Source of the DNA: Macrostomum lignano
Lineage: Eukaryota
Direction of reading: 5' to 3'
NCBI GenBank assembly: GCA_002269645.1
Contig: NIVC01001111.1
Location: 62,001 to 126,000, forward strand
DNA length: 64,000 bases
Position numbers and translations under genes: made by a program. Shown here piece by piece: positions 3,181-64,000 of the stretch. The notes under the pieces were generated by a model. The model did no database searches. It had not been told where the DNA came from and saw only the letters and a list, made by a program, of their open reading frames with translations. Every line of letters begins with the position of its first letter. The first letter of the stretch is position 1.

Positions 3181-3700
3181 CTTTGTTTATAACAATGATC
3201 ATGCAAATGTAACAACTTATTACTAATAAACTTTAATAATGAATTGAAATTGTGAACTTTATTGCTTGCATATAAGCATGAATCACTTTGATTCACTTAT
3301 TTCCCAATCTTTTGTAACTTTCTACTATGCCTGTTAATTAATGCTACTGAAACAACCTGCATATTTGCATTTTATAATCACTAATAAACTTTCAAGTTTC
3401 AAATAAAAGAGTTAATTCTTTTACCATATACTTATTTAAATTATATATTTATTTATAAAAGTATTTTATATGTCATAAGTCATAGGTTTTTTAAATTATT
3501 ATTTATTAGGACACCTTTTTTAGCTTGTAAATCTTTTAGATGACCTCAGTGTTTCACTAAAAAGGTGGAAAAGCAGACAGTGCATTAGAAAGTCTGTTTT
3601 GAAAAAAAGTGCAAGAATGTTCTAACTTTGAAGTATCTAATAGATTAATGCTTATTAACAATTATAAATTAATATTAATAATCTTAATATAAATTAAGAG
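3181..3700. repeat. Diverged dispersed repeat, copy 1 (copy 2 at 7349-7772, same orientation)
   Basis: Shared blocks such as CATGCAAATGTAACAACTTATTA, AATCACTTTGATTCA, TTTCCCAATCTTTTGTAACTTTCTA, TAGATGACCTC. Confidence 0.8.
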
Positions 3701-3858
3701 TGATTAAATTAAGATTTTTTTGTTTTAATGCTAATGGCAATGCTTTTGCCATTAATGGAAGTTAAGATTTTCATTAAGTGTTCAACACTGTGGTCTAGTT
3801 CCAAACGTGCACAAAAAATCACAGTTGGTCAATCCCTAATAATTAGTAATTATCATTA

Positions 3859-4644
3859 GGCTCATTCCATATAAGCATGGTCGTAACATGACAGGTTATT
3901 TTTACTTATAAAATGAAATCTAAAAATAGAATATACTAAACCAATATTTTAAATGAAAGATTATTTTGTCTAGAATATATTTATAGAGTTTCATATAGAT
4001 ATCATCATTAGTATAGATGCTATTAAACCTTAAATGACACTTATGGTCGTAACGACAGGATTTTTGACATATAGAAACTAAAAGGTAAAAGTCTTATAAC
4101 ATTTTTCATTTTTGATATTTTGCAATACATTTTTAAAATTTGACTAAGAACATCTTTAGAAATCATACTCTTTTATTAGAATATATAAACTCAAAAGGCA
4201 ACAAAGATACAAAAGAAAAGGCAGCCTTATGGTCGTAACATTATGGTCGTAACATATTTTTTTCTGTCAATTCAGTAACTTTGAGGTACTAATACATTAA
4301 AAATATAATAGATTATTTAGTCACCAATGCTTTTATCTGATGATGCAAGTACTATACTTTTATCTATAGTTTGTTTCAACCTTCAAAAGCTTTCTATTTG
4401 TTTTTAAAAGGTACAAAATCTTAATGATGTCTTTTGCTTCGAAAAATGTCCAAATTTTTACAAAAATGACTTTTTGCCAATTGATAACATACTAATCCAA
4501 CATTTTACCATTCCTTTATTCTTAGATTGTATATATTGCACAATATAAACATTTGGTAAAAAAATAGGCTAATTAGGCAATGGCAAGCAAAAATATTGAC
4601 TTTTTTCTATTTTCCAAATATGTCCATCTTATATGGAATGAGCC
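3859..4644. mobile_element. MITE, 786 bp, 17-bp perfect TIR, ATTA target duplication
   Basis: GGCTCATTCCATATAAG at 3859 and CTTATATGGAATGAGCC ending 4644; ATTA on both sides; internal ATGGTCGTAAC x4. Confidence 0.85.
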
Positions 4645-4934
4645 ATTACAATGACATTTTTTATTTATAAATTATTATTCATTATTTAGCACCAGCAGAA
4701 AAATAGTCCACTGCCACTAAGCCTAGTCATTTAAATAGTCCAGCAAACAAATTGTCCTGGATCCTAAACTTTTGATCTTTTGATAAAAGTTCTATAAATT
4801 AGTCAAAAGGTAAACATGTCTTTATACTAGTAATTTGACAGGTATTAATATAGGCAAGAACACTGATTAAAAGTTAATCTTTAAGTCAAAGCATTGACTA
4901 AGAATCCACTTATACAAAAAGAAAAAATCCTTAC

Positions 4935-5043
4935 CCCGACTGGCAGAAAGAATCATATTTGGAAATTGTGGATTAGTAGCGATCTGGGTTACCCAGCCAT
5001 TGTGACCAATGAGCTGGCCCTTGTATTGCATGTGTTCTGCCAT
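4935..5043 (-). CDS. RACK1: RACK1 (GNB2L1) coding exon 1; remaining exons are left of the window
   Basis: [36 protein letters not shown] followed by a G|GTAAGG donor; 109-nt phase-1 exon as in other animal RACK1 genes. Confidence 0.93.
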
Positions 5044-5717
5044 TGCTTTATTTTCGATCGTTGATAAAGATTCGAAAGTAACTGTATTGCTGATTGCAAA
5101 TGCAATAATACGATAATGGTAAAAGATCGCGCGAGACAAAAGCACAATGTAATTTAAAATGTTTATAAGACTAGCAATAAAAAAGTAACTGAAGTATTTT
5201 TGTACAAAAGTAGTTCTAAAAAATATTTTGAAAGCAAAGAGGATTGACTTTGTAAACAAATCTATTTAGGAGCTGTTAAGAACAGTTTTTGTTTTAATTT
5301 TTTTAAAGTTAAACAAAATCTTTACAAAGTTATTAATCAAAAATGTTAAAATTTAAAATTTAAATATTAATATTTTCAAAAAAAATTTAACTGTTGTTTT
5401 CATCATAAATAATGTCTTATTTTATTTTTTCTAGGAACTACTGATAAAAACTTTCAAAAACATTGCTAACTTATACAGATTTACGTTCTCTCTAACTGTC
5501 TTCGTCTGCCTGTCTTAGTTGATAAAAAATATTTATTAGGGCAGAATTTTAGAAAACAGTAAACGCCTTTTAGAGACTTTAGGCTCACCTTTTGGCTGCT
5601 TGCAGTTTTGGAAGACCTAGTAGTACACTGAATAAACTTTTTGTTTTTTTTTAAATAGTACTAGATAAGTCTTATTAACATATTGGTATTGATATTCTAT
5701 AATAAACTTCAACCACA
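5044..5717. promoter_or_regulatory. Putative bidirectional promoter of RACK1 and PP2A-C
   Basis: Divergent ATGs 674 bp apart; local CpG cluster at 5050-5136; minus-strand TCT-like GATCTTTTACC and TCTCGCGCGA (5127-5136). Confidence 0.6.
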
Positions 5718-10014
<4,297 letters not shown>

Positions 10015-38800: not shown

Positions 38801-40531
38801 CCAAGCAGAACAATCAAATTAGCATCTTCTCCCCGTTTGAAGCTGCACCCAAATCCAGTGCGTGTGCACAGCGAGCAAGAGAGACCTGGCACCCCAGCCC
38901 GATAAACAGTTTGGCTTTCCTCTTGCCTGCTTGTGTCTGACTTTGACCTCTCTCCTTACTGTTCTCTTATTGGTTGAGCTAGATTGGGCCTGGCCCCAGA
39001 CTAAGTTTCGTTTGACTTTGAACTCTCTCCTTACTGCTCTCTCATTGGCTGAGCCAGATTGGGCCTACCCCCTAGGGTGAGTTTTGTCCGTCTGACTTTG
39101 ACCTCTCTCCTTACTGCTCTCTCATTGGCTGAGCTAGATTGGCCGGCCTCTTGGGCTGTTTCCTCCGTCTTGCGTTCACTTGTGTACACCGAGTTAAATG
39201 CTTGATGTTGATTCTCAACCCTATAGGCTCCTGAGGCCGCAAACTCAGAGGAAGGAAAGGAAATGTTAGCTGTCACATTAAACTGAAGTGATAATGCGCA
39301 GACAAACTACTAAAAAAGAATAGAAGCTCCACTATTTCACAACTTTAATTGCAAGTGACACATTCAGTTGTTATATCATCTGTAAACAAATCTAGTGAAT
39401 TATTAGTCTGATTGCAGCAAGGCAGACTATATCGCTGAAGGACAGCATCTTCTTTTAGCGATATAGCCTGCTGACACACGCGTTTTTGAAATTCTTTCAA
39501 CTATCATTGCGCAACTTTTTTAACACACTGTAAAATATTCTTATAACATTCCATTATAGCTACTCGTTAGTAGGAGATTTCTAATAAGCCTGACCGGAGC
39601 AGGATGAACTGTAGCTTAACTTGATTTTGCTTTAAAGGTGAGTGGCTGTGACGCAACACGCAAGCCGATAATTAAGCTGCATACTAACCGCGACCAACTC
39701 TGCTTAACTGGGTGACTGCTAACTAAAAATTAAACACAAATAAGAAAATATGCAACAAACCTGTTCGCCTTCCTCCTTGAGCTGATCAACAAAATAGTCC
39801 ACCTGCTTGGCTCGGCTGCCCAATTTCATTGCCTTGCCGCCGCCAGCCGCCTGGGCAGCCGGCCTGGCCCGATTCGGCTCCGGCATCGTCGACGTCAGCG
39901 TCGGCGTCGTGTCGACGTATCCTCCGCCGCCGACTCCGCTGCCGCCGCCCATGCCACCGCCGCCGCCGAAAGCGGCCATCCGACCACCGCCGCCGCCGCC
40001 ACCAGCCCGGCGCATCTCCTTGTTCTTCAGCGTGAGCTCCTTAGCCTTCGCCCGCATAGCGGCTTTGGCCTCCTTCTCCTGAGCAACCCGAACTGCCAGG
40101 AACACTTTCTCTTCGTGCGAGTCCATCTCAGTGAAGGTCTTAATCTGGGCCAGATTGACGCTCTCCCGATAGCCCAGAGCGACAATTTCGTCGAATGCAA
40201 ATATCAGCTGGAAGGCGTTGTCCAGCAGATCTTTCTCCTCCATACCGGACGAGTATTCGGGAATTACTCTGGCGAATAGGCGAAGAGTCTCCAGATCCTC
40301 CAGTATGTTGCTAGCCTTAGTGGTTAAAAGCAATACGTAGAGCTTCTCCAATGGCTGATAGACGTAGCGCACGCTCTCAGTCTCGATGAAAGTGTGCTGC
40401 TTGTCTGTTGACATCAGCTTGGGGAAGGCGGCTAGCAGGCCTTCAATGCGGGAGCGCGTCATCTCCACGAACTGGCGGGAGATGAGCGTCTTGCCCGACT
40501 TGTTGCACACGGCGGCGGCTAGGAGCACCAT
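35813..40531 (-). CDS. ARCN1: Coatomer subunit delta (archain), 533 aa; exons 40531-39761, 38680-38350, 37891-37677, 36097-35813
   Basis: MVLLAAAVCNKSGKTLISRQFVEMTRSRIEGLL longin domain plus MHD (THPNIDK, FPVN..V.KWR, INCWP); GT-AG introns, phases consistent (1602 nt). Confidence 0.96.
36105..37632. repeat. 32-33-bp minisatellite filling delta-COP intron 3, about 45 copies
   Basis: GGGACAGTGGCGGCACATCAAAGACACTGGAGG. Confidence 0.96.
38935..39145. repeat. ~75-80-bp repeat, 3 copies
   Basis: TGACTTTGACCTCTCTCCTTACTG..ATTGG.TGAGC.AGATTGG at 38937, 39012, 39092. Confidence 0.85.
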
Positions 40532-42385
40532 CAATGATGGCATTGGAGATTATTCATGACTAATTAAGGGATTAATGCTTATCAATAGTGATGCAACCAA
40601 ACACAAAGTAAAATGCAAATCTGATTCCTAATAAGAAAAAATTATTTTGGATGTCCTATGACCAAGAGCTAAGAAGAACTAAATAAACTGTCTACTGGTC
40701 TGACATGTTTGCTACTAAATTAAGTAACCAATATAAAGTGTAATAGTATAGCCAGTATAAAAAATAGTCAAAAAAGCCCTCTTCTTTTTAAAAATAGCTT
40801 TAGAGAAATTAGTAATAATAAAACAGCATATATTATTAGTGATTTCAAAACATTTTACTACTAATTATAAAACCTTTTAGTATATTACTTGACAAAACCA
40901 AATTATTGTCAACTTTAAAATAAACATGACCAAAACAAAGTAATTATTTTGCATATTTTATGCAATAATGCCATAGATTTCAATGCTATTGTATGCCAGC
41001 CACAAGCTATAACAAGTATAGCTAAGAATTGTATAGTAATGATTTTTGCTAAAAAGTTAAATTTCCTGATTCTCCTAATCATTCTAGCTAAAGCTTATAT
41101 ATGCAATTATTTTCTAGTATTTACTTATGTGTTATATCTTTTATAATATAGACCACTTGCTTTCATTTTCTATGAATTCTAGAATTTTAACAAGCCATTA
41201 CTATAAAAAGATAACAAAGTTTATCATGATGGTCATGCTTATAATTAGTATAATATATCCAGTGAATCTGGCAGCAAGAAAATCTAGCAATAGTCAATTT
41301 GGCAATAGTCAATGTAGCAACAAGGTATAATAGATTTAATTAGCTATCTAATCAACTATTTAGCATTTATATCCTAGATTATTAGAGCTATACTATTATT
41401 TTTTTTAATATTATTTAATTTTTCAAATGTTTATCTATATAGAATTTGTTAAACTTAATGGAATAGTTGACTATATATTACCTTCTATATTTTATAGACT
41501 ATTTATATACATAGAAATTGCAATGTAACTAGCAATTTTTTGAATCTTTGATTTTCAAATATTGTTAAAAAACTTTTAATCATTAATTGCTTAGAAACTT
41601 TTATATATTTGTATAGTTTATGTGTAGCAACAAAATAAATGAATATGAGTTCCAATTTATATAGGACATATAGACATTAAATATTTGCATTATGTAATAA
41701 ATTGCTTTACTATATTTTTACTTAAAAGGTAAAATTAAATTATTAGGCCCTACAGTAATTTTATTTAATTGAGATTGTTGATTTATATATCCTAGATTTA
41801 AACAAGAGTACTATATGCATACAGTATAAAATATTAGATGCAATTATAAAATCTGTAATCTATAAAAAATATATTTCTATATTGCCTATTGCTGCTTTGA
41901 TTGCTGGATTGTGATCTATAAAAATCAATCTTTTTAGATCTATGAAAAGTAAAAAGGGCTTATTTTTATATATAGCCCAATTTTATTTCTTTCTTTGAAA
42001 AAATAATTTCCTTTTCTTTTAAATATTTGCTTATTTTATGCAATTTTCTTATGTTGTAGTGTTATTATTTATTTGCAAAGTCAAATAAACTTTTTTTAAA
42101 TTAAAAATTGTCTTTTGTATGCATATTGGCTAGTTATAAGACCCTAACCTAACTAAAATTCATTTTTACTAGGCCCTTAGCTAGATGCCTAGATAAAACA
42201 AACAAGAGCATAGGGAATTTGTTATATAATACCAAAGCTTTGTCTATTTCATTTTATGATGCCCCTTGGCTTGGTATTCAATAGACTTTTTAATGTTCAA
42301 AAAGTAAGAAAAAGGTAGGTTTTAAATCTAGTTTAGTTAGTCAAGTGGATCATGAAAAAATGTTATATTGTTATTGACATAGTAT

Positions 42386-42589
42386 CAGGCACTGCGGAAG
42401 GAGTTTTTGCCAGGGGGGGGGCAGGACCAAGTTTCCAAAACTCAAGCCCAGACCCTGTCTTGGACAATGACCAAAAATTTGAGCAAAATTATGCTGTTGA
42501 ACAGTATTTGAGGGGGGGGGGCAATGCCCCCCCCAACTCAATGTCAGGGGGGCAGCTGCCCCCCTGCCCCCCCTGTTCTGTGGCGCCTG
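42386..42589. mobile_element. Short hAT-type MITE, 204 bp
   Basis: Ends CAGGCACTGCGGAA / TTCTGTGGCGCCTG; TSD CATAGTAT/CATAGCAT; G/C-run subterminal tracts. Confidence 0.7.
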
Positions 42590-42989
42590 CATAGCATAGA
42601 CTTAATCAATTTTATTTAGGCCTAATGTAAGAAATTTTAGCAATATTGTGAGCATTGAATTTTAAAAATAAAGATAGAATCATCCCAAAGATAAAAGAAT
42701 ATTGTAGGCCTAATATTGTTATCTATCAGTAAGTTTATTGCTTGTTTAGTGGCAAAATAGTTACTAATAACAAAAAAGCTTAAGTCGGGGACAAAACCAT
42801 CTTTTTATTTTATAGCCTAAGGCTAAGCCATCTGGCCATGGCGATCCATCTACCTGGATGGCTGGATTGAACTCTGTATGTCAAGTCAATCAAGCCAAGG
42901 CTATATTAAAACTATGAATCGTCATGGTATTGACTACTGTTGAAAATTTTGTCAGTGTTCTATGCTTTACTTCTTCAAAAAGTTATACT

Positions 42990-43620
42990 ACAATAGCTTT
43001 TACGCTTGAGGACGACGGACGTGGACGGAAGCAATCTGATTAATGCTAAATGCCAAGGCGCGATTTTGCCACATAAGCACAGTTTAAATGCGTGCCATTT
43101 TACATTTTAACTGTATTTATGTAATTATTTTCGCAACGACTTTAGAAGTCTATTTAACTGCATTTGGCCTAGTTATAAAAAGATGTATTAACGTATATAA
43201 CACTGGAGGTTGCGTAAAAGCACAAACTTAATTCGTTTAACCCGTCAGCATTGCTTCAATAAATTTTTCTAACTAATAAAGTCTTGTCAAGCGAGGCGTT
43301 GCAAGACTACTGTCACTGTATTAATTTTTTGAGAACGTACTGTGTTAAACATGACGAGTGACATTTAAGCTTACATTTATATAGTATGAGAAACAAAGAC
43401 CGTGCCGTGAGTCTGGACAAGTTAGAGAAAATATTATACAGTACGCATGCAAGGACAGTGGTATACACTGATATTTTACACTGATAAACTAAGAGGGCGA
43501 TCATTTTCACTACATGTTTAAGTTTACTTCGGCTACTTACTAGGGGGGGGGACTTGGTTTAGATTCATTTACTTATACACGGAATTTCTCGCGATTGGAT
43601 AAATTGCTAGTTTTATAATT
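42990..43620. promoter_or_regulatory. CpG-retaining segment, candidate delta-COP promoter region
   Basis: Abrupt CpG cluster after a nearly CpG-free zone; TCTCGCGA at 43587-43594; no TSS evidence. Confidence 0.35.
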
Positions 43621-44464
43621 TGTTAATGTTCTTTTAACAAAAAGAATAATGTAACCGGCCTACATACATCTAATGAAATCTCTATAAAGTCATAATTAAT
43701 AGGCATGGATTAAGACCGCAGGCGATGTCATCATGCAATTACGTTACCCGATTGTATGTACTAATGTACAGTACATCCATGCATTACGTACAAATTGGTT
43801 TAATTCATATAACAGCTCTTATTCTCTGCGCGCACCTGTGCACTCGCTCATTATTAAATTCGAACTAATTTTCGAATATATGCTAAAAACTACTTGTAAT
43901 TGAGAGCCTAAATAATTTTGCACGTTAAAAGTCGCATTAAGGCGAAGAAAAGAATTGTTTATACTAAAGGACCTGATCGAGCTCTCCAAACTGAGGCAAA
44001 GAGAAACTTACTTTTTCTCACCCCCTGCTGTCCTGTCGCAGAGTCGAATTTGAGGAGCCCATGGTCATTCAGGGGTGGTGGGGGTGAAAGCATTTCGCTT
44101 AGCTTAATATAGGGCTTTGCTTTCATGCTCTGTCGATCCAACGCCTTGAGTGTCCAGAGCATACAAAACACATGCAAGTGAATTGAACTCGTTAACTCGC
44201 GGAGAGCCCGGCACAATTCTCTAAACAGAAAAACTAGAGGGATTTTTACGGATCTGCGGAGGTTCCGGGTGAGTATATTGGCGATCAAGCCAGAGGCTTG
44301 ACATAAACTCTCTTATGGTACAATGGAAAAGTTAAATGCTGCATGATGTGTCTAAATAAGGATTGAAATTTTTAAGATCAGCTCAATAATTGGTTACTTC
44401 ATTTACCACCTTTTGTAAGTTATCGCTACAAGTTCCTAACTTCTTGCAGAAGCAGCGGAGCTGC

Positions 44465-52266: not shown

Positions 52267-53544
52267 TTATTTTTTATCGATAGCTGCAGCATCCCAGAGC
52301 CACTTGAGAGCATCATCCTGGGCCACCCGAAGCCCACCTATGTGGTGGGCAGGCAGCCACCTGTCTCCTCTCCAGTTGCCGACTGTCTGCGCGGCAACTT
52401 CTCAGCCAGTCAGCGCAAGCAGCCAGTCTGTCAGACAGACAAAGTGAGACAATGAGGCCGCGTTTTGGATGCAGCAAGCAAAGAAGGCGGTATAAAAAAG
52501 CACTGCTAAGCTATAATTGGAATTCGGATCGGAACCATCCCCTTGCGGTGCCAATGCGGAGAGGGGGGCAACGAAAGACGGTTAAAAAAGGCCTCCTCAG
52601 ATGGAGAACCATTTAGTTAGCTATTCGATGCGGTGGTTCTGGGCAAGTTGAATCAAAATGAGAACCAATGAGCAGTGATAGTCAACAACAAAGACTGCGA
52701 ACTTTCGAGTAGGTAAGAGTCCGTGCACTGTTCTAAATATGGTGTGCGGACACAGAAATCTCGATAATAGATGTCTGGATTACATTATCTAGGATTTCAT
52801 GCCTCAGCCGAGCTTCTCGGATGGGGTTGGGTGGGGTCAGCTGTCCCTCTTGACCCCTGGATCCGAAATACACTGTACCTATAAAATTGAAGTATGAAAC
52901 TACCGAAATGCGCCCCATCATAGATGGTTTTCCCATTTCCTAAAGGCTCATGACTTCCTTTTACAAATTTCTCGGGGGAGACGTCACCCGACCTCCCCCC
53001 ACTGACCGTGACCTCAAGCTAGGTAGATTGATCTCGCTCATAGGATTCTGTCAGATGGCAGAGATTTCCATTCCAATGGCAAATATTCGAACTCCGTGGC
53101 GCGGGAGGAGACCGAGCCACAAACTCAAGTGGTTTTTTGCCTGCTTTTTTCTTCCTGGTCGCCTCTCCCCGGGGGTTATCGGGATTCAGCCGGTCATCGT
53201 CTTCGTTAGAAGGGCCGGCCAGGGGGGGGGGAACTCAGCGGACCACCCGTGGCGCCGCGCCTCCGCCCGTGCAGACGGAGCCAAAGAGTTTTTCGTCAGT
53301 CCTTTTTAGCTTTGCCGACAGGCGAACTCGTGGGAGTGGGGAGGGTGGGGTGGGTGCGGGCCGGCCATTGTTGAGACTGCTTGATGAGGCGCGCCTGTCA
53401 AAGTGTTTTGACAGGTCGGGGCTGAGACAGAGAGTATCTTGTTGCTTTGATTTTATGCATCACATGTGGGTCTCACAGCTTTTCCAGCGCGGCTCTTTCC
53501 CGGTTGAAAAAAATACTGGATTAGCCCATTGAAATTGGCCCGCT

Positions 53545-54995
53545 CATCGGCCACTTCGTGTCAGAAAAGCCCGCTCTAAAAGCCCGCTCATTTTTCCAAA
53601 TCAACGAGTCTCTCAAATCGGCCCGCTTCTGGGCCCGCTGGCTGGCCCGCTCACTGGCCCGTTCTAAACCGGCCCGCTGGCTGGCCCGTTGTTTGGCCCG
53701 CTGGCTGGCCCGTTGGTTGGCCCGCTCACTGGCCCACTCATTGACCCGTTCTAAACCGGCCTGCTGGCTGGCCCGCTGATTGGCCCCCTCATTGGCCCGT
53801 TCTAAACCGGCCCGCTGGTTGGCCCGTTGGTTGGCCCGCTGATTGGCCCGTTCTTAACCGGCCCGCTGGTTGGCCCGCTCATTGGCCCACTCATTGACCC
53901 GTTGTAAACCGGCCTGCTGGCTGGCCCGCTCATTGGCCCGTTCTAAACCAGCCCGCTCATTGGCCCGTTCTAAACCGGCCCGCTCATTGGCCCGTTCTAA
54001 ACCGGCCCGCTGGCTGGCCCGTTGGTTGGCCCGCTCACTGGCCCACTCATTGACCCATTCTAAACCGGCCTGCTGGCTGGCCCGCTGATTGGCCCCCTCA
54101 TTGGCCCGTTCTAAACCGGCCCGCTGGTTGGCCCGTTGGTTGGCCCGCTGATTGGCCCGTTCTTAACCGGCCCGCTGGTTGGCCCGCTCATTGGCCCACT
54201 CATTGACCCGTTGTAAACCGGCCTGCTGGCTGGCCCGCTCATTGGCCCGTTCTAAACCAGCCCGCTCATTGGCCCGTTCTAAACCGGCCCGCTCATTGGC
54301 CCGTTCTAAACCGGCCCGCTGGCTGGCCCGTTGGTTGGCCCGCTGGTTGGCCCGTTCTAAACCGGCCCGCTGGTTGGCCCGTTGGTTGGCCCGCTGGCTG
54401 GCCCGCTCACTGGCCCGTTCTAAACCGGCCCGCTGGCTGGCCCGTTGTTTGGCCCGCTGGCTGGCCCGTTGGTTGGCCCGCTCACTGGCCCACTCATTGA
54501 CCCATTCTAAACCGGCCTGCTGGCTGGCCCGCTGATTGGCCCCCTCATTGGCCCGTTCTAAACCGGCCCGCTGGTTGGCCCGTTGGTTGGCCCGCTGATT
54601 GGCCCGTTCTTAACCGGCCCGCTGGTTGGCCCGCTCATTGGCCCACTCATTGACCCGTTGTAAACCGGCCTGCTGGCTGGCCCGCTCATTGGCCCGTTCT
54701 AAACCAGCCCGCTGGCTGGCCCGTTGGTTGGCCCGCTGGTTGGCCCGTTCTAAACCGGCCCGCTGGTTGGCCCGTTGGTTGGCCCGCTGGTTGGCCCGCT
54801 CACTGGCCCACTCATTGACCCGTTGTAAACCGGCCTGCTGGCTGGCCCGCTCATTGGCCCGTTCTAAACCAGCCCGCTCATTGGCCCGTTCTAAACCGGC
54901 CCGCTCATTGGCCCGTTCTAAACCGGCTCGCTGGCTGTCCTGTTGGTTGGCCCGCTGGTTGGCCCGTTCTAAACCGGCCCTCTGGTTGGCCCGCT
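53545..54995. repeat. Subterminal repeat array (TGGCCCGC and TTCTAAACCGGCCCGC units) with higher-order duplication
   Basis: Directly visible; begins about 45 bp inside the candidate terminus. Confidence 0.9.
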
Positions 54996-55319
54996 GAACG
55001 AACAAAAAAAATAAGTAAAGAAGCAAAATAAGCATGAGATTTCTAAGTCAGACCGATGAGCCGTACAATTAGCTTTTTTATAAAAACCGGGAATATACAT
55101 CATCGGATCTGGTAAAAACAAAGAGATGTTAAGGTTAAAATTGAATACTAGTATTTTTTCATGGTGGCACGAATAGCTAAAAGAGCTAATATAGCTAATA
55201 GAGCTAAAAGAGCTAATATATATAAAAGAGCAACCCTAGCCTCAGAGTCTATTCTCAACCCAAAGTAATGTTTGCCAGCATAGTGAAAAATTGTCACCAC
55301 AATCGAGGCCTAGTCTCTA

Positions 55320-56990
55320 CTACTCGCTTTCCTCTTCATTTTCTGCGCAGGCGCCACTTTTCGCAGACGAACTCTCCCGATCCCGTACGGTCCTGGCTGT
55401 ACGGCGGAAGACCTCGCCGAGTTCGGCGTCTGTGAATAGTTTTTTGTCCTCCTCTGAGACCAGTTTACTGGCCAGGTAGGACCGTATGGCCGCCTTCTTG
55501 GAGCTATCCAGCTCAACCCGGTTGGCCGCTTTCTCTCCTTTCACCTGTCGACCAGCCCAAGATGCGGTTCGCAGGTCTTGCTCAGGGCACACAGCAAGTA
55601 TGACTAGCCGAATGGCTCGTCTGCGAATCTTGTTATTGTTTGCGGCTTTTCGCATTTCAACTGCTGCGGCTTCCAATTTTGTCAGGGCCAACGGACAAAC
55701 CGTGACACCGGGAAATGCAGCTATCAGCGGCACACGTTTCGACGACTGGTTGCCCATCATGGAGGTCGATATATTTGCGATTGCCGTCGCAATGGCGTGG
55801 CTCACAAATCCACTGGTAAGCTGCGATGACGTCGAGCCACTTGGCTCGGCATCGATGCCGATATCGGCAGCAGCTGATGACGACTCTCCGGGTGCAGTAC
55901 TCGAACCAGCGACCAACGTTTCGTAGTCACTAATAGAGCGCACCAGACTTTCGAGGTGGCTGCATGATTCTGTAGTTCTACGTGCCACCTCGTTGGCCGA
56001 CCGCGCCTGCGCCGTGACGAACCGTAGCGTCTCAAGTATCTGAGAATTCGCATGCATGGAACTTGCAAGACGGGTGTCATACTTTTGCAGCACGTCATCT
56101 TTCTGTGCCAGTTCCTGTTTCAGCTGCTCATTCTCAGACCGAATGGCCTCATTCTCAATCTTCAGGTTGGCTGCATCAGTTTCAGCAGCCCCCCGCTTGT
56201 CCGTCTCTTCTCGATTTGCCTCACGTAGGTCACGACATTCGATGTCGAGGTTCCGGCAGCGCGGGCATCCGGCATCAGGGTGATTTATAACGGGTTGCAC
56301 GCGCCTATAGGCGCCTGCAGAGCCCGACCCCATTAAAGTTGCCGATTTGGCCAGGTTGTCCCGGGCAGCGTAGGCGGACTTCCTATCCGGAAAAGGCCCG
56401 GCTGTCAGGAAAGCGTCGAAAGTTTTTGCACTCGGGCTATGGCCAGTCCGTACTTGTACTTTAACGCCGACTGTTCGTGTTACGGGGTCCGGGTCGACGA
56501 TGCACTTTTGGTCGATGGCCATAACTTTGCCGGTGTTAGTGTACGTGAGCACCCACCAAATAGCTTTGTGGATGACCATGACACGGGGCGCCTTAGCCTT
56601 TGGTGGTCCACCGGCCCTATTGCGATGCCGCATCTCCTTTCTCGACTCTAGATCTGGCTCGCTCGATGAGTCAGATAGAGATTCGCGATGCCGATGCCTA
56701 TCGGCATTGGCTTCGGCTTTCCGTTTTGTAGTAGAGCCGGTCGGCTCCGCGGACACGGCCGTGCTCATATCGGAGCCGATTAGCGCCGTTGAAGTGGCGT
56801 CGTGGGCTTTAGGGAGCGTCGTGGGCTCATCTCTGCCGTCGCCATTCAGCTCAGCAGGATTTTCCTGGACGTCAGCAGCTGCAGTTGTTAGGCCAGTATT
56901 GGCATCTTTATCTTTCCGCTTCTCTTTTTCGGCCCGATTCTCGTGATCCCTCTTCTTATTCATTCTATCTGTCTTCTTTCCGTCTCCCAT
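55320..56990 (-). CDS. Transposon accessory protein: beta-rich N-terminal domain, CxxC plus coiled coil, C-terminal BEN-like domain (~556 aa from MGDGKK)
   Basis: Long clean ORF; LRTASWAG...LDSSKKAAIRSY...LGEVFRRTARTVRDR resembles a BEN domain; CATTGCAG acceptor 4 nt before the ATG at 56990. Confidence 0.65.
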   Translation of the reverse strand: MGDGKKTDRMNKKRDHENRAEKEKRKDKDANTGLTTAAADVQENPAELNGDGRDEPTTLPKAHDATSTALIGSDMSTAVSAEPTGSTTKRKAEANADRHRHRESLSDSSSEPDLESRKEMRHRNRAGGPPKAKAPRVMVIHKAIWWVLTYTNTGKVMAIDQKCIVDPDPVTRTVGVKVQVRTGHSPSAKTFDAFLTAGPFPDRKSAYAARDNLAKSATLMGSGSAGAYRRVQPVINHPDAGCPRCRNLDIECRDLREANREETDKRGAAETDAANLKIENEAIRSENEQLKQELAQKDDVLQKYDTRLASSMHANSQILETLRFVTAQARSANEVARRTTESCSHLESLVRSISDYETLVAGSSTAPGESSSAAADIGIDAEPSGSTSSQLTSGFVSHAIATAIANISTSMMGNQSSKRVPLIAAFPGVTVCPLALTKLEAAAVEMRKAANNNKIRRRAIRLVILAVCPEQDLRTASWAGRQVKGEKAANRVELDSSKKAAIRSYLASKLVSEEDKKLFTDAELGEVFRRTARTVRDRESSSAKSGACAENEEESE

Positions 56991-57380
56991 TATTCTGCAA
57001 TGAGAGCGGGAAAGGTTTCTTTCTAAATGCGGTTTCATATGACATGCGTCATATGACGCAAGCATGCGTCAGTGTCATGCTAATGAAAGTAAGGAAGGAT
57101 ATTGAATTCCATAACGAAAAATGCAACGCCTGTGCATCTTCTATGTGCAATCGACGCTGACAAGTCGACGCAAGTATACTTTAGCTATGAGACGTTGATG
57201 GCATGGAAGCTGGCAAGCTACTGCTGGGAGAAGCGCTACTATAGTAGTACTCGCTACACTACTCATGACATTGAGCCGGCTGGCTCGACTAGAAGTATTT
57301 ATATAAATAGATCTAGATCTAATAGAGTAGTTACAGTACAATATTGTCAATTATTAACAGTGACGTACAGCCTATGCTGC

Positions 57381-58316
57381 CTACAGCTTCTTATCCCGTG
57401 TGTTAGACGGCCCGGCGCTAGCACCCGTCAGTGGACGCATGCGCCTCTTGCCTAACCTCATGGCCTCAAAGGGCGCTTCTGGCTGAGTGTCAGGCATTTC
57501 GATTTTAAAAAAGTTGGGGTCGCGCTTCTGCTGAGGCTGATTACTGCGGTGCCGCCCGTGCTCTTGCAGCCGTCTCTGCTTTGTACGAGGTGACAAATTC
57601 GAAAACCAGGCCTCACAGTCAGGGCAGCAGTGCGGGTCCAGTTCCTGCCGATCCGCCCGTTTTCGAACAACGCGTACGCAAGCGTAATTCTTTTGATTCG
57701 GCGGGTCAGGCATGCGGTTATACTCCGCGCGCAGTTTGTTCAAGTTCTCAGCCGGCTCGTAGTCTCGCGCCGCGGGCTGATCGTCACTGGCGACGTTCGC
57801 AGTCGAGCCAGCCGGCTCAATGTCGTTAAACAGAGACGGCGAACCGAGCTGGGTCTCGGCGTTGTAGCGAAGCTGATCGTCGTTGGCGTCGTTCGCAGTC
57901 GAGCCAGCCGGCTCAATGTCGTCAAACAGAGACGGCGAACCGAGCTGGGTCTCGGCGTTGTAGCGAAGCTGATCGTCGTTGGCGTCGTTCGCAGTCGAGC
58001 CAGCCGGCTCAATGTCGTCAAACAGAGACGGCGAACCGAGCTGGGTCTCGGCGTTGTAGCGAAGCTGATCGTCGTTGGCGTCGTTCGCAGTCGAGCCAGC
58101 CGGCTCAATGTCGTCAAACAGAGACGGCGAACCGAGCTGGGTCTCGGCGTTGTAGCGAAGCTGATCGTCATAGGCGTCGTTCGCAGTCGAACCAGCCGGT
58201 AACCGGTAACCGATCAGGTCGACAAGAGTCGGCGACATAGTTCGCGCCACGTCTCGAAGGAGGTCATCCATGATGGCGGAGAAGTTAACTCCTCTAGGGC
58301 TCAGGTCGTTCGACAT
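57381..58316 (-). CDS. CtIP/Sae2 C-terminal-domain protein with four 32-aa repeats (311 aa)
   Basis: [23 protein letters not shown]...RHR...PNFF.IEMPDTQ matches the CtIP C-terminus [23 protein letters not shown]...RHR...ENFWEVGFPSTQ; 96-bp repeat; TTTTCAG acceptor 2 nt before the ATG. Confidence 0.8.
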
Positions 58317-58396
58317 GTCTGAAAAGCAAGTATATGTCGTCTGTTATGCACACGCAAGTTTGTCCGACACACATCTGAGCTTGGAGAATCAATACC

Positions 58397-58467
58397 TATC
58401 TATCTATCTATCTACCTATCTATCTACCTATCTATCTATCTATCTATCATCTATCTATCTATCTATC

Positions 58468-58534
<67 letters not shown>

Positions 58535-58552
58535 ATCTATCTATCTATCTAC

Positions 58553-58593
<41 letters not shown>

Positions 58594-58610
58594 ATCTATC
58601 TATCTATCAT
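58397..58610. repeat. (TATC)n tract flanked by a 28-bp direct repeat
   Basis: ACACATCTGAGCTTGGAGAATCAATACC at 58369-58396 and 58611-58638. Confidence 0.92.
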
Positions 58611-59127
58611 ACACATCTGAGCTTGGAGAATCAATACCATGCTGCTGGGCTGTGCAGTGGGAAATTGTTAACTATTTATTACTATTACGTTACTAGTAAG
58701 TAGAGACGCTTGACAAACTTGATTAGTGAACGAACGATGATTGACCTGATTGGCCTGTATACGCCACAAATCGTATATATATATGTATATATGAGCAAAA
58801 TAAGCAATATAAACTAAATAAGCAGTGCGAAAGCAATATAATCAATACAAAGGCAATGTAAGCAATATAAGCAGTATTAGCAATATGAGCAATATAAGCA
58901 ATATGAGCCGACTGGCTCGATTTCAAAGGGCCAATTTGTCCAATTTCTCCAAATTGCCGTGCTCTTTCTAAAACGTGGCGGTCTTTGTACGGTTTAAGCG
59001 GAATCTAATCAGATTCAATAAACTCTATATTCTGTTATACTCTCTTAATTGTGGTGGGCAGAAACGACTAGTGATTGAAGCTGCGGCTAACTACACGTTC
59101 CGGAATTACTAACGTGGCCTACATTAA

Positions 59128-60450
59128 TTACTTAAACCGCACATAGGCCGCCCACGTCCCTACAATGGCGACGGCCAGAGTCATGTATAGGACATTCGAT
59201 TTATGTCCTAAGTACACCAGCCGGTACTCCTGGGCAGCTCGACCGCGTCGCCTTGACTTTTTCAGCACCTTGACCCGATTTTGCACCGGTGGCGTGACAC
59301 CGGCGGATCCGGCGTGCTCATTAACGGTGCTCACGGCTCGGTCGAAGATGGCCTGGGCGTCGAGCGACAACTCGGTCTTCGCGCCAGCCGGCGCGTCTAC
59401 GATTCCGCTGTCTCTGAGGTGCGAATACAACGTGCGGACTGCATTAGTCCAGCACGTTGTTTCGCATCCCCGGGACCACAGAAAGATAAAGACACAAACT
59501 AGTGTCAAGATGGCATTGCCCATGCTGTCCGAAAATAGTATGCTGTGTTCAGACTCATACTCCCGTAGTTTGTAAGAAGCAGCAGTCATGAACGTCTGCA
59601 TATCTGTATGCCAGCAGTATGGCCAGTTTTTTCCATTCGCGTACAGCTCTCTGCACCGACCGCAAATGCCAGAGTAATTTCCCGTCGCGCCGAGGGTGCC
59701 TTCGGCCTGCTGAGCGGAATCGCTCAGAGGCTCGTTGTACAACGACATGTCGCGAAGCTGTTTGACTACTCCTGTGGCAGCAGACGCAGCTGGGACACAG
59801 GTCGAGCCGGTTGGCTCGACACGACCCGTCGCGCCGAGGGTGCCTTCGGCCTGCTGAGCGGAATCGCTCAGAGGCTCGTTGTACAACGACATGTCGCGAA
59901 GCTGTTTGACTACTCCTGTGGCAGCAGACGCAGCTGGGACACAGGTCGAGCCGGTTGGCTCGACACGACCCGTCGCGCCGAGGGTGCCTTCGGCCTGCTG
60001 AGCGGAATCGCTCAGAGGCTCGTTGTACAACGACATGTCGCGAAGCTGTTTGACTACTCCTGTGGCAGCAGACGCAGCTGGGACACAGGTCGAGCCGGTT
60101 GGCTCGACACGACCCGTCGCGCCGAGGGTGCCTTCGGCCTGCTGAGCGGAATCGCTCAGAGGCTCGTTGTACAACGACATGTCGCGAAGCTGTTTGACTA
60201 CTCCTGTGGCAGCAGACGCAGGAACACAGCTCGAGCCGACTGGCTCAACTGTAGCTCCGGCGTCGTCACTACAGTCGTCGTCCCAGTTGCTGCAGGCGCG
60301 CGATTTAACTAGCCGTTGCTGCTCGGCATGGGCTGCGTGGATGTCATCCTCACAGTCGTCGCAGTGAGAGGAGCGACAAAAAAAACAATAGTCGGCGAAC
60401 GCGAAGTATTCCCGCGAATTGCATTTGGGGCATGGTTGCTGGTCCGGCAT
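59128..60450 (-). CDS. B-box-type zinc-finger protein with 48-aa tandem repeats and a second Cys/His cluster (440 aa)
   Basis: C-x2-C-x11-C-x2-C-x4-C-x2-C-x4-H-x2-H fits the B-box1 consensus; 144-bp repeat x3.5; CGRC...CWH. Confidence 0.6.
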   Translation of the reverse strand: MPDQQPCPKCNSREYFAFADYCFFCRSSHCDDCEDDIHAAHAEQQRLVKSRACSNWDDDCSDDAGATVEPVGSSCVPASAATGVVKQLRDMSLYNEPLSDSAQQAEGTLGATGRVEPTGSTCVPAASAATGVVKQLRDMSLYNEPLSDSAQQAEGTLGATGRVEPTGSTCVPAASAATGVVKQLRDMSLYNEPLSDSAQQAEGTLGATGRVEPTGSTCVPAASAATGVVKQLRDMSLYNEPLSDSAQQAEGTLGATGNYSGICGRCRELYANGKNWPYCWHTDMQTFMTAASYKLREYESEHSILFSDSMGNAILTLVCVFIFLWSRGCETTCWTNAVRTLYSHLRDSGIVDAPAGAKTELSLDAQAIFDRAVSTVNEHAGSAGVTPPVQNRVKVLKKSRRRGRAAQEYRLVYLGHKSNVLYMTLAVAIVGTWAAYVRFK

Positions 60451-61064
60451 TGTGATGTCTTAATCTTAATTTGTTTATTTGTCCTTAATTTGTACAAATT
60501 AATTTCTTTTGCTGGTACTTCTTTGTCAGTGGGTCGACTGAAATTAATGCGAAGTAGGTGCACGATTATTGGAACAAAAGGACAGCTGCGTACCGGTTGT
60601 AACCTACTATATTGTCAGGTAGAAATAAAGGCGTAAAGGAAGGCAACATATGGATATAGACGTCATGTGACCGACGTTTGTTACTAAATATAAATATAAT
60701 TTCCTATGATACCACATAGCAATGTGCAGTAGTAAGCAGTATAAGCAATATATATATTATATATAAAAGCAATAAAAGCAAAACACAGTTGAAGAAGGCA
60801 TGCTGGAAAAGAGCAATTATGGCATATCCCGTCCCGTTTGAGCGAGGGTGTCCTCTAGCCCTCACCCCTTGTTGTAAACTGTAGTCATAAGTTTTGAATG
60901 AACAGGTGACATTTCTACTCAATTTAAAAAGCTTTAGAACTCTCGAATGTTTACTTACTATAGTGATGTGAGTTCTAAGAAATTATATTGCTTTACCAGA
61001 AAGCCTGTGCAACGATTTTTCCTTCTTATTGGGACACCCTACGTACAATGAGTACATACAATTC

Positions 61065-63845
61065 TCACGCTGCGTAAGAAAACTGAATATGGGGGAGGAA
61101 TGCTACGTAGCGGTCGTTCACACAACACGTAGCGAGTACGTCGTTAGCAGGGATTTCGAAGTAGTATTTGTCAACTGCGCAAAATGGATTGGCACGCAGG
61201 CGCCGAACGTGTGCGACTGAGCATCCGCCGTGGTCCGGTTCGCCAGTCAAGCGGTACAACGGATGATTGTCCTCGTGCGGCTCCACAGTCAGAAGGCGGC
61301 GTAGGCGAACCCATGCGCAATTGTCCCGGAGTTGAATTTCCTCAATTCGTGCGAATTCAAACGGCTGACGACAGTTAGGGATGAGGACAGTAACAAAGCA
61401 CGAGGCGGCGCGCTGGTGGATCAGGCGAGGCAAGAATATTTCAATGCGTAGCCCGCTGGTCAGTACTGCTTTGCCATACCGTGTGTCACCGCCCGCCAAT
61501 TGGCGGCGAATAGGATTGCGCAGTCGCACACCATCCGGCAGTCGAACCTCACCATTTGGTGGTCCCTCGCTGAAGATGTTGGGGAGTTGCAATTCGGCCA
61601 TCATTTGCCTTCGCGCCAATTGGCGCTGTAGGAGGCCGGCAACTTCGGTGTCAACATTCCTGGAGCCGTGAATTTTGGTGCGAAGATTCGCATGCGACGA
61701 CTCAAACAAGCCCGCAGACATCCTCCACATTGGCCCGTATAAAGTTACGTACGATACAAAGTGCTCACAAACTTGGTGTGCATTGTACGTAAGGGCCATG
61801 TTGGAGTACATCTGAGGCAGCTGACTGTAAAAGTAGTGCAGAAGCCGGCTGGCTTTCATCACTTCCATTAGAGGCGCTCCATCCAATGTAAGCCAGAACA
61901 TGGCCGTGGACAGTAGCTGAAGGTGCCAGTAGTAGCGGTCGGGCAGGATGCCTTCCATCACCATAGGGCCGTAGACGATTAACCATGCCTCAAGTTCGTG
62001 GCCCCGAAACATGCCGAGTTCATGGAAACTTCGGGGAGCACGTTGATGAGACAGGGGTACGTGAATCCGCGAAGAGGCAAGGTCCACATCTGCACGTCGC
62101 GAAACTAGATTGGGGTTATGCGCGTGGTACATGTCTGGTTTCTTAGGATGAAACAGCTGTTTCAAAATCCAGTGAACGAGTCCAAGATAGCACTGATGAA
62201 GCAGACACGGTGGACACCCATGCATGTAGTCGAAACCGTTTAACTGGTCCAACACTGACACGCACATAACGCCCAGATAGTTGTCCTTGCCGACCGGGAT
62301 GTTGTGCGCCAGTAGGCGCGTGTCTCGCAAGCTACGAGCGTGCGGTGTAATACAACCGACTGCGGTTGCCAGCGCAACCGCCTCTTCTTTGCCACTGACT
62401 GGGTACCGATTGGCACCCAATGATCTCTGCGTCTTCACATAGCAGTTGTCGCAGCCGAACTCTGCATTGTGACGCTTTAGACCGACAACCTCAGCTCTCT
62501 GTGGGGCATCCAAGACGAATAGGTACGGGTGCAGTCGAAGAAGACCAGGCGCGTCGCCTTCAGTGCCACCACCTGTGCTGTAGGTGATCCCGATAGACCG
62601 GAGCTCATTCAGCTCTCTAACAAGGCCGGGAAGGAAGGTGGATGTCTTGACTTTCGACTTTGCAGCCCAGAAACCACATACGACGATGAAACGCGATTTC
62701 ATTGCTTCGTGTACTTCGTTGATACTCAAGTACACTGGGCACATTTCCATCAGCGCGTCTGCAAATACTGGAAAGCCGTCGATGTTCACAGTATACGACA
62801 GATCTTGCTTCAAGTGTAGCCGAACTGAACGCTTGAAATGCCGATACTCGTCGCAACTGGATACTGAGACAAAATTACGATCTTCAGATGACAAATCGAC
62901 AGGGAAAGTTACGCTCTGTAGAAGCCGGCACTGTTCAATTAACTGTCTGATTTGCAATTTAAAGTCGGTGGTATAAAACTTGGATACGCCGGCCGGCGAC
63001 AGTTCCTTGTTACAATAAGTGCAATTTTCACGGTTCTGAGCCTGTGCTGACGTGACCTCAGCACTACAGGAGGAACAGAACAGTCGGGGTGGCGATGTAA
63101 AGTCGTTCGCGAATGCCTGGACTGTTTTCCGTAGTAAATATACACTACCAGGCAGGTTGCTACCGACTGGCACAGCTGCATGGAAGAGGCGAAGCAGGTC
63201 AGCTATGCCTTTCCTTGGCAGAGACTGGCGCTCGCTGAACAAATGCACATAGGCCGCAAACGAATCGTAGGTCAACGGAGAGTCTAGGAAAAGTGCGGCT
63301 CCATTTCTCCTACGCGGCTGCATATCCATAGCTTCTGGGTTATGGGTGGCTCCATTGCCAACACACGGTACATCCTCATCCTCTGGTGGGCGGTCATCTT
63401 CAGTGAAGTCCTCACAATCGTCGCACTGCTCGATGGCGTCCAACGCCATTGGAGCGCCACTCCAATAGTCGTCATCTGGAGCTTCTTCGCCTGGTTCCTC
63501 AACGATAGATCTAGAAGATACGTCCTCATCGTCGTTGTCTGAATACTGCGAGCCGGTAGGCTCGACGACCATGGGAGTCTGGACGCCACTGCTACATCCA
63601 CCTGTTGCCAATGCTGGCTGCCAGCTGCTGCCAACACTGGCTACACTGTTGCTTGTTTGCGCGTCATGAGTGGTTGGTACGTCATGAGTGGTCCGAGTTG
63701 CAGTTAGTAAATGGCTCACTGAAGCTTCTGCTCGTGTCGGACGGGCTGTCGCCGCAACTGTCTGTCTGAGTGATTCTTTGAGTCGACTGAAGCGCCGTGC
63801 GATGGCAACTGACTTCTTGTCGAGCTCTTTTAGTCGTTCAAGTGA
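61065..63845 (-). CDS. CACTA/EnSpm-type (Transposase_21/tnp2-like) DDE transposase; large exon from an acceptor at 63846-63847, 5' exon(s) not resolved
   Basis: Uninterrupted frame; CxxC..CxxC, NIDG, LDAP.RA.V.G.K.H.A.FGC..C, LLH...LG, FESSH motifs (D, D, E candidates present). Confidence 0.88.
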   Translation of the reverse strand, partial: SLERLKELDKKSVAIARRFSRLKESLRQTVAATARPTRAEASVSHLLTATRTTHDVPTTHDAQTSNSVASVGSSWQPALATGGCSSGVQTPMVVEPTGSQYSDNDDEDVSSRSIVEEPGEEAPDDDYWSGAPMALDAIEQCDDCEDFTEDDRPPEDEDVPCVGNGATHNPEAMDMQPRRRNGAALFLDSPLTYDSFAAYVHLFSERQSLPRKGIADLLRLFHAAVPVGSNLPGSVYLLRKTVQAFANDFTSPPRLFCSSCSAEVTSAQAQNRENCTYCNKELSPAGVSKFYTTDFKLQIRQLIEQCRLLQSVTFPVDLSSEDRNFVSVSSCDEYRHFKRSVRLHLKQDLSYTVNIDGFPVFADALMEMCPVYLSINEVHEAMKSRFIVVCGFWAAKSKVKTSTFLPGLVRELNELRSIGITYSTGGGTEGDAPGLLRLHPYLFVLDAPQRAEVVGLKRHNAEFGCDNCYVKTQRSLGANRYPVSGKEEAVALATAVGCITPHARSLRDTRLLAHNIPVGKDNYLGVMCVSVLDQLNGFDYMHGCPPCLLHQCYLGLVHWILKQLFHPKKPDMYHAHNPNLVSRRADVDLASSRIHVPLSHQRAPRSFHELGMFRGHELEAWLIVYGPMVMEGILPDRYYWHLQLLSTAMFWLTLDGAPLMEVMKASRLLHYFYSQLPQMYSNMALTYNAHQVCEHFVSYVTLYGPMWRMSAGLFESSHANLRTKIHGSRNVDTEVAGLLQRQLARRQMMAELQLPNIFSEGPPNGEVRLPDGVRLRNPIRRQLAGGDTRYGKAVLTSGLRIEIFLPRLIHQRAASCFVTVLIPNCRQPFEFARIEEIQLRDNCAWVRLRRLLTVEPHEDNHPLYRLTGEPDHGGCSVAHVRRLRANPFCAVDKYYFEIPANDVLATCCVNDRYVAFLPHIQFSYAA

Positions 63846-64000
63846 CTGAAAATGAAGAAATTGAATACCTGTGTGACTAGGAGAGAATCCGTACTAAAAT
63901 TGTTAATTAACAAATACCATCATTCTACTATCAGTTTAAATCAGTTTGCTATCTTAGCCCAAGAGCCAACAAAGGGCGAAGCAATGGTTTCACACTAAAC

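Follow-up and report, generated by a model that had tools for sequence, protein, structure and literature searches.

The 64-kb stretch of DNA analysed here (the window) comes from Macrostomum lignano; a UniRef protein of this species matches the product of its ORF1 at 100% identity over 500 residues. Judged by homology, the window carries a CMC/CACTA-type DNA transposon with four intact open reading frames (ORFs), all on the minus strand. A single palindrome, GAGCC-N4-GGCTC, where N4 stands for four variable bases, recurs 13 times through these genes and the spacers between them. The palindrome is probably a nucleic-acid recognition site for a putative binder, laid over coding sequence. The features of the element are collected in Table 1.

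Table 1. Genes, repeat arrays and palindrome sites of the transposon, in window coordinates (nt, nucleotides; aa, amino acids).
Feature	Position	Strand	Remarks
ORF1, predicted CMC/CACTA (Tnp2-like) transposase	61065..63845	-	program ORF 61065-63719
Palindrome site, ORF1 variable N-terminal tail	63550..63563	-	V-E-P-T-G-S-Q (GTC GAG CCT ACC GGC TCG CAG)
Second in-frame palindrome, CGCCAATTGGCG	61494-61505, 61614-61625	-	R-Q-L-A in ORF1, both copies
ORF2, 440 aa	59128..60450	-	N-terminal Cys-rich zinc-finger-like segment, four 48-aa repeats, C-terminal half with no assigned domain
144-bp array	59681-60246		ORF2; 4.0 copies, 98% matches, 4 sites including diverged first unit 60233
Palindrome site, ORF2, diverged first unit of 144-bp array	60233..60246	-	V-E-P-V-G-S-S
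Three palindrome sites, one per 144-bp unit, ORF2	59804, 59948, 60092 (59804..60105)	-	V-E-P-T-G-S-T
Non-coding palindrome site, 210 nt 3' of ORF2 stop codon	58905..58918	.	N4 = AGTC
ORF3, 311 aa	57381..58316	-	32-aa repeats, then C-terminal SAE2/CtIP domain
96-bp array	57776-58199		ORF3; 4.4 copies, 97% matches, 4 sites
Four palindrome sites, one per 96-bp unit, ORF3	57805, 57901, 57997, 58093 (57805..58106)	-	I-E-P-A-G-S-T
Non-coding palindrome site 57273-57286 inside 24-nt inverted copy	57267..57290	.	spacer between ORF3 and ORF4
ORF4, 581 aa	55320..57065	-	likely start ATG 56990, after TTGCAG acceptor
Palindrome site, ORF4	56734..56747	-	A-E-P-T-G-S-T
Palindrome site, ORF4, between coiled coil and C-terminal helical domain	55834..55847	-	A-E-P-S-G-S-T
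Subterminal satellite (probable), 1.4 kb, 12-/27-/51-bp units	53620..55000	.	downstream of ORF4

A four-gene transposon with a possible common transcript

ORF1 had 4955 relatives at E <= 0.001 in a representative protein library. It had no direct Pfam match of its own, but PF02992 was matched by six of ten sampled relatives, three of which reached its 28.6-bit cutoff, and DUF4218 and DUF1258 were also matched among the sampled proteins. Because its relatives match PF02992, ORF1 can be assigned by transitive homology to the transposases of the CMC superfamily. Its nearest relatives, at 33-43% identity, come from M. lignano itself and from metagenomes, and the homology shared with relatives begins near residue 140. 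The C-terminus of ORF3 (57381-57770) matches PF08573 at 26.6-28.3 bits, against a cutoff of 19.8. Members of the CtIP/SAE2 family process hairpin-capped and blocked DNA ends, and the ORF3 protein may be relevant to post-excision repair. The ORF4 protein starts with a basic segment, continues as a coiled coil and ends in a helical domain; a search of 5.8 billion proteins returned no homologue of it.

Acceptor-like TTNCAG motifs lie 0-100 nt 5' of all four ORFs on the minus strand (63846, ~60540, 58322 and 56995). No stop codon interrupts the frame of ORF1 as far as a TTTCAG acceptor whose last base is at 63846, and another TTTCAG immediately precedes the ATG of ORF3. In M. lignano, where operons are common, ATG forms the 3' end of the spliced leader and [T/C]TNCAG is the acceptor consensus (PMC8629364). 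A spliced-leader ATG joined at 63845 would be in frame with ORF1 (M-SLERLKELDKK...). A trans-spliced transcription unit, possibly polycistronic or operon-like, is thus plausible.

Downstream of ORF4 lies a satellite composed of the units GGCCCGCTGGCT, GGCCCGCTCATT and GGCCCGTTCTAAACC, which probably represents the element's subterminal repeats. This repeat reappears 5' of ORF1 in the gene model P0001, where it is read (as PAGWPVLNRP...) in the direction of ORF1, opposite to the array in the window, as judged from the P0001 protein only. From these repeats, inverted subterminal arrays seem to flank the element on both sides, an arrangement known from CACTA elements. Upstream of ORF1 the element continues beyond the edge of the window (position 64000), and at most one end lies inside; a candidate terminus is located near 53460-53540.

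Two intergenic spacers contain arrays of 9-bp units (TGCTTATAT and TATTGCTTA on the minus strand), at 58789-58908 and ~60700-60830. The former starts at the palindrome at 58905, and the arrays may function in the promoter or the processing of the gene that follows.

An inverted pair of fixed spacing, confined to the element

We searched the window for the pattern GAGCCNNNNGGCTC, that is GAGCC-N4-GGCTC, and compared the counts with those in dinucleotide-preserving shuffles. Thirteen exact matches were found, all within 55834-63563, whereas the shuffles gave a mean of 0.06 and a maximum of 1 per 64-kb window. The remaining 53 kb of the window held no exact match. The search thus returned every one of the 13 positions listed in the original prediction, an earlier reading of this DNA from its letters, and added none; the claims made there that the other 53 kb lacks the motif and that chance should produce well under one copy proved correct. 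With one mismatch allowed, 19 sites were found in the window versus 1.79 expected, the sole extra one within the element being at 55605.

Three properties of these sites indicate that the enriched or selected object is the whole inverted pair. Among spacings of 0-12 nt, GAGCC and GGCTC were paired at N4 only; the swapped order, GGCTC..GAGCC, gave zero sites; and isolated half-sites were hardly enriched, at 2.3 per kb in the element versus 1.74 per kb in the other 53.5 kb. When all but one unit of each tandem array was masked, GAGCC-N4-GGCTC, at 8 copies, still outnumbered every other 5-N4-5 pattern of the element.

Around the ten arm bases the sites follow a looser consensus, gtcGAGCC-rryy-GGCTCgac. 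The original prediction had many copies extending to the 18-mer TCGAGCC-N4-GGCTCGA. An extension by TC or GA on at least one side is indeed common (12 of 13 sites; the site at 56734 has it on neither), but the complete 18-mer occurs only in three 144-bp units, which form the 8+8 palindrome GTCGAGCC-AACC-GGCTCGAC; most of the other sites are extended on a single side.

The palindrome has a density of about one per kb, alike in the coding and non-coding parts of the element. Every gene carries one or more copies, and so do two of the three intergenic spacers inside the window. Two tandem arrays within ORF2 and ORF3, both of which had been predicted to carry sites, hold 8 of the 13, four each. 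Collapsing the arrays leaves 8 sites, in line with the earlier count of about eight independent ones, but two of these are not fully independent: 60233 is a member of the 144-bp array, and 57273 sits in a 24-nt stretch (57267-57290) that is a perfect inverted copy of the core of the 96-bp unit, 510-798 nt away from the four units (57801-58112). This inverted copy could be a templated insertion; alternatively, it could pair with the 96-bp units if one transcript contains both. The independent set therefore comprises six coding sites (five when 60233 is counted with its array) plus the pair in the spacers.

The two spacer sites, 57273 and 58905, were correctly placed between the main ORFs: around each of them, stop codons on both strands leave only short frames, the former lying ~95 nt 3' of the ORF3 stop codon and ~280 nt 5' of the likely ORF4 start. 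Within the genes, the first site of ORF2 lies ~200 nt past the ATG, as does the first intact site of ORF3, and the first site of ORF4 lies ~240-320 nt past it; the start of ORF1 is uncertain. This placement, together with the two spacer sites, could fit a mark on each cistron, which we give as an observation and not as evidence of function.

Codon choice points to constraint on the nucleic acid

All coding copies read E-P-x-G-S, encoded as GAG, CCN, NNN, GGC and TCN. The codons are fixed, as the original prediction had stated, except for the third base of Pro and the x codon, both of which vary. The synonymous positions that fall in the arms (the third bases of Glu and Gly, and the codon family of Ser) are invariant. 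Over the six sites the third base of Pro is A, G, G, A, A and T, and the N4 spacers are AAGT, GACC, GGCT, AACC, AGTC and TACC; the spacers are thus nearly saturated with changes while the 10 arm bases have none. This free variation of the Pro third base and N4 rules out recent origin of the copies as the reason why the arms are alike.

We estimated how often palindromic arms would arise given the peptide from the codon usage of the element, with motif codons and extra repeat units excluded (GAG, 56% of Glu; GGC, 44% of Gly; TCN, 66% of Ser). The probability was 0.16 per site, giving 1.8e-5 for six sites and 1.1e-4 for five. In an exact enumeration over the synonymous encodings of the six heptapeptides, 30 of 30 arm pairs were complementary versus 22.05 expected (P = 1.5e-4). 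The frozen synonymous arms and the two non-coding copies together indicate constraint at the level of the nucleic acid.

The palindrome as a possible site for a dimeric factor

Our preferred reading of these sequence patterns, a tentative one at somewhat less than an even chance, is that a dimeric factor recognises the palindrome in double-stranded DNA and that the site is tolerated within genes in a linker-friendly frame. It would be a sequence-specific, two-fold symmetric recognition site private to this transposon family, and its binder a homodimeric factor encoded by the element or by the host. In the genes, the site would sit in poorly conserved, probably disordered linkers and tails, where only the frame that gives a harmless flexible peptide (E-P-small-G-S) would be tolerated; a linker-friendly frame would also make the palindrome resemble a peptide motif. 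The segment around 55834 has a predicted local distance difference test score (pLDDT) below 50 in an AlphaFold2 model, which is weak evidence of disorder. The factor might serve in marking, regulating or condensing the transcription unit, possibly one of four genes resolved by spliced-leader trans-splicing.

Identical half-sites at a fixed spacing around a variable centre are the usual layout of a homodimer site on double-stranded DNA. In the element, the half-sites are symmetric, their spacing is fixed and they are conserved beyond coding need. Because the arms are invariant and the centre varies, sequence-specific recognition of half-sites fits better than an RNA recognised by structure only, and the target would be DNA rather than RNA, which we favour only moderately. 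The original prediction had proposed a dimer-binding operator, and this part of it gains from the symmetry, the fixed N4, the synonymous freeze and the two non-coding copies. The functions suggested with it, namely autoregulation, anti-silencing and synapsis through the palindrome, are speculation. CACTA proteins bind subterminal repeats, and the idea of synapsis is weakened, as the transposase would more plausibly bind the subterminal satellite (53620-55000) than the palindrome.

Several observations weigh against a DNA site for a dimer. The six independent coding sites share one of three possible frames, [V/I/A]-E-P-[S/T/A/V]-G-S-[T/S/Q], which has a probability of (1/3)^5 = 0.004 if frames are free, and x is confined to S, T, A and V (0.30^6 = 7e-4, with a post hoc grouping of residues). 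The single frame and the small x imply that a constraint on the peptide, or a strong tolerance filter, also acts. Outside the 5+5 arms, complementarity is no greater than the peptides predict (P = 0.15): the residues themselves, V (GTN) at -1 and T (ACN) at +1, already bring complementary bases, so the wider symmetry is uninformative, and we discarded the outer-flank symmetry and the RRYY centre as evidence, real as the pattern is. Each spacer copy shares its N4 with the nearest upstream coding copy (that of 58905, for instance, matches that of 60233), and one is the perfect 24-nt inverted copy; the spacer copies could be neutral templated copies and not selected sites. The codon evidence comes from one copy of the element. 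Regulatory operators normally lie in promoters and not in gene bodies. Finally, no candidate binder emerged from the analysis, and ORF4 gave no BEN match. Taking both sets of results together, constraints on the nucleic acid and on the peptide (or tolerance of it) both seem to act.

EPxGS as a possible peptide motif

The constraint on the peptide raises the alternative, already named in the original prediction, that what the four genes share is a short linear peptide motif (SLiM). EPxGS would then serve for docking or modification in the disordered parts of all four proteins, recruiting one common partner from the host or the element, with the tandem repeats of ORF2 and ORF3 providing multivalency and with the palindromic encoding and the spacer copies being secondary. 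The use of one frame at all six coding sites agrees with this, as do the restriction of x to small residues and the restricted choice of flanking residues. EP.GS is moreover the sole four-residue gapped pattern common to all four proteins, and EPxGS is seen 6 times versus 0.025 expected by composition in 1944 collapsed codons. The coding sites fall outside conserved cores, as SLiMs would; the site in ORF1 occupies residues 53-57, whereas homology starts only at ~140. In P0005, a metagenome relative that is 39% identical, APSGSD occurs four times at an N-terminal position like that of the ORF1 site.

A peptide motif does not account for synonymous arm positions that are frozen while the Pro third base and the x codon vary (P = 1.5e-4 in the enumeration above), provides no reason for encoding as a perfect inverted repeat and leaves the two non-coding copies unexplained. 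It is also neither conserved nor enriched in 149 relatives, where P.GS occurs at 0.176 per 1000 residues versus 0.182 expected from composition; a family-wide PxGS motif was rejected on this lack of excess, and the closest M. lignano transposase paralogues are without an EPxGS peptide. The case of P0005 is within the range of chance: [EDA]P.GS was seen 5 times among the relatives, four of them in one tandem array, versus ~3.8 expected in 114 thousand residues, and APSGSD is unable to form GAGCC-N4-GGCTC in the same register. We know of no documented motif that matches EPxGS. The docking pattern of the USP7 MATH domain, P/A-x-x-S, fits loosely and carries little information. We thus regard a peptide motif alone as unlikely, although the peptide-level part of the argument stands. 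If it were correct, EPxGS would be a new docking motif common to four transposon proteins.

A sister family of M. lignano gene models (P0006 and P0157-P0162) fuses a transposase to a zinc-finger, a coiled coil and a weak BEN-like region. In the P0006 family, E-P-A-[A/T] occurs four times (AEPATE, TEPAAP, PEPAAN and SEPAAT); EPAAP could be encoded by GAGCC-N3-GGCTC, though only the protein was seen.

RNA hairpins and repair by-products as less likely readings

The same inverted repeat could act on sense transcripts, as an RNA hairpin with a G+C-rich stem of 5-8 bp and a 4-nt loop that tags every cistron and two intercistronic regions for an RNA-binding protein, with proposed roles in processing of a polycistronic precursor, export, translation control or targeting. 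In folding models of the 8 sites, each within 134 nt of sequence, the stem reached a pair probability of 0.98 or more at six but was out-competed at the other two; isolated stems had predicted energies of -8.6 to -14.1 kcal/mol. A hairpin is thus physically plausible, and a sixth pair forms on the sense strand at 6 of the 8 sites if G-U is allowed. The acceptor-like motifs 5' of the four ORFs, together with the commonness of operons in M. lignano, make a common precursor plausible, and the 24-nt inverted repeat could pair the 3' flank of ORF3 with its repeats. Against this, neither compensatory nor G-U changes are seen in the stems, the arms being identical in every copy; what varies is the loop, usually the recognised part. 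No Rfam match was found at E <= 1 in 53000-64000, and a known RNA family was dropped on this ground. We judge an RNA hairpin decidedly unlikely. The histone stem-loop was dismissed, since it has its arms in the opposite order.

The site for a dimer must also be weighed against an origin without any binder, in which a hairpin-prone palindrome is a hotspot for slippage, template switching or templated insertion that spread copies and seeded the 96-bp and 144-bp arrays, selection having merely removed the frames that damage proteins. The 144-bp array starts exactly at a site (60246), and the 96-bp array starts within a degenerate site, with the half-site GAGCCGGCTG following at ~57755. The stretch 57267-57290 repeats 24 nt of a template 510 nt away, perfectly and in inverted orientation; this is typical of templated insertion, a process established for polymerase-theta end joining, and the N4 shared by both spacer copies with the nearest coding copy points the same way. 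The element also encodes a CtIP/SAE2-like protein, of a family that processes hairpin ends. Against this, coding copies in different ORFs lack flanking homology, and their N4 differ at about half of the positions while the arms are intact; intact arms with diverged spacers and no shared flanks imply long-term constraint and not recent copying. A 5-bp arm is, moreover, too short for cruciform extrusion, and the model leaves the origin of the first copy in each gene unexplained. We consider this explanation very unlikely.

Three further ideas were tried and dropped. A 2A-like skipping peptide (D-[VI]-E-x-N-P-G-P) was excluded by the absence of NPGP, and the self-cleaving G|S-T motif of pyruvoyl enzymes by its need for a folded catalytic domain. 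Excision footprints would share neither one sequence nor one frame.

The two levels of constraint could also belong to one design, in which a sequence of 14-20 nt is selected both as a DNA or RNA palindrome for a dimeric factor of the element and as a V-E-P-x-G-S-T tag on all four of its proteins. Such a dual code strikes us as improbable. If true, the element would mark its genes and their products alike, for example in self-recognition, in cis-preference or when the transposition machinery assembles on the element's DNA, and the in-frame palindrome CGCCAATTGGCG would be another instance of the same design.

ORF4 and a second in-frame palindrome

The original prediction had offered a BEN-like protein, encoded by ORF4, as one possible binder. 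This label was not confirmed. ORF4 gave no Pfam BEN match even at E <= 10 and no match in a sequence search of the PDB; a single-sequence AlphaFold2 model gave no Foldseek match at E <= 0.001, the model itself being poor (pLDDT 54.5). The equivalent region of the P0006 family has a sub-threshold BEN match (E = 0.0045; 17.6 bits versus a cutoff of 23.2). A likeness by eye between ORF4 and the C-terminal part of the P0006 family was set aside because BLASTP did not find it significant.

ORF1 contains a second palindrome, CGCCAATTGGCG, whose two in-frame copies, exactly 120 bp apart, are the only ones in the window. By a rough and post hoc estimate, chance would yield such a pair of identical 12-nt palindromes in 8.8 kb ~5e-4 times. 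The core of this palindrome, CCAATTGG, is the published site of the Drosophila BEN-solo factor Insensitive.

Comparison with known systems

Transposons carry end sites for their own proteins, and exons carry occasional transcription-factor sites. By superfamily, the closest system is maize En/Spm, in which 12-bp subterminal motifs are bound by the element-encoded TnpA and inverted pairs of motifs are the preferred sites of the dimer. Both elements belong to the same superfamily (PF02992 relatives), and in both a short element-specific motif is repeated in both orientations. The En/Spm motifs are subterminal and non-coding, however, a place that is occupied here by the separate satellite at 53620-55000, whereas the palindrome is internal, lies mostly in ORFs and in one frame, and is a strict 5-N4-5 inverted repeat.

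By architecture, the sites of BEN-solo factors are closest. Insensitive is dimeric, with a coiled coil followed by a C-terminal BEN domain, and recognises the palindrome CCAATTGG (PMC4281564, PMC6317261). ORF4 likewise has a coiled coil and then a C-terminal helical domain, and the P0006-family region has its sub-threshold BEN match; but CCAATTGG is unrelated to GAGCC-N4-GGCTC, and ORF4 is without a BEN match.

Other comparisons are looser. Like SLiMs, EPxGS has 4-5 defined residues, occurs in non-conserved tails and linkers of functionally linked proteins and is multiplied in tandem, but SLiMs show no synonymous constraint, no encoding as an inverted repeat and no recurrence in non-coding DNA. 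Exonic transcription-factor sites ("duons") and transpositional enhancers inside an element, such as the internal activation sequence (IAS) of phage Mu, are binding sites in coding or mobile DNA. They resemble the palindrome in that protein binding, putative in our case, constrains codon choice, but they are single loci or heterogeneous, whereas here an identical palindrome runs through four genes in a constant frame. The AP-2 family recognises the consensus GCC-N3/4-GGC. The palindrome contains GCC-N4-GGC; set against that consensus, it differs in its invariant outer GA...TC and in having no GCC-N3-GGC variants.

To our knowledge, no multi-gene DNA transposon has been described in which one identical palindrome, with frozen synonymous positions, runs through all genes in a constant frame; a paper on M. 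lignano transposons deals with long terminal repeat (LTR) elements only. We therefore rate the palindrome, from a single copy, as an apparently undescribed form of mobile-element cis-acting site. If it is a binding site, it would represent a compact overlap of protein and DNA codes and would offer a handle on the regulation or recognition of a large CACTA-type element in a flatworm. Transgenesis exists for M. lignano.

Searches for further copies and the rest of the window

No second copy or fragment of the element was detected elsewhere in the window by blastn or tblastn, which returned microsatellites only. A profile built from ORF1 and its six nearest relatives retrieved P0001 alone, and contig searches with P0001, ORF1, ORF2, ORF3 and ORF4 (ORF1 and ORF4 each from two starts) gave no encoding contig on record. 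A metagenome scan with the alignment of relatives matched 119 stretches, no relative among them. The relatives P0003-P0009 were compared as proteins only.

Positions 1-53000 of the window consist mostly of minisatellite arrays with periods of 11-65 bp, several of them longer than 1 kb and with a strong strand skew. This part also contains long GACA, TCAG and ATCT microsatellites, as well as AT-rich blocks at 1-8000 and 40000-44000. An ORF on the minus strand at 39719-40543 encodes a clathrin-adaptor small-chain domain.

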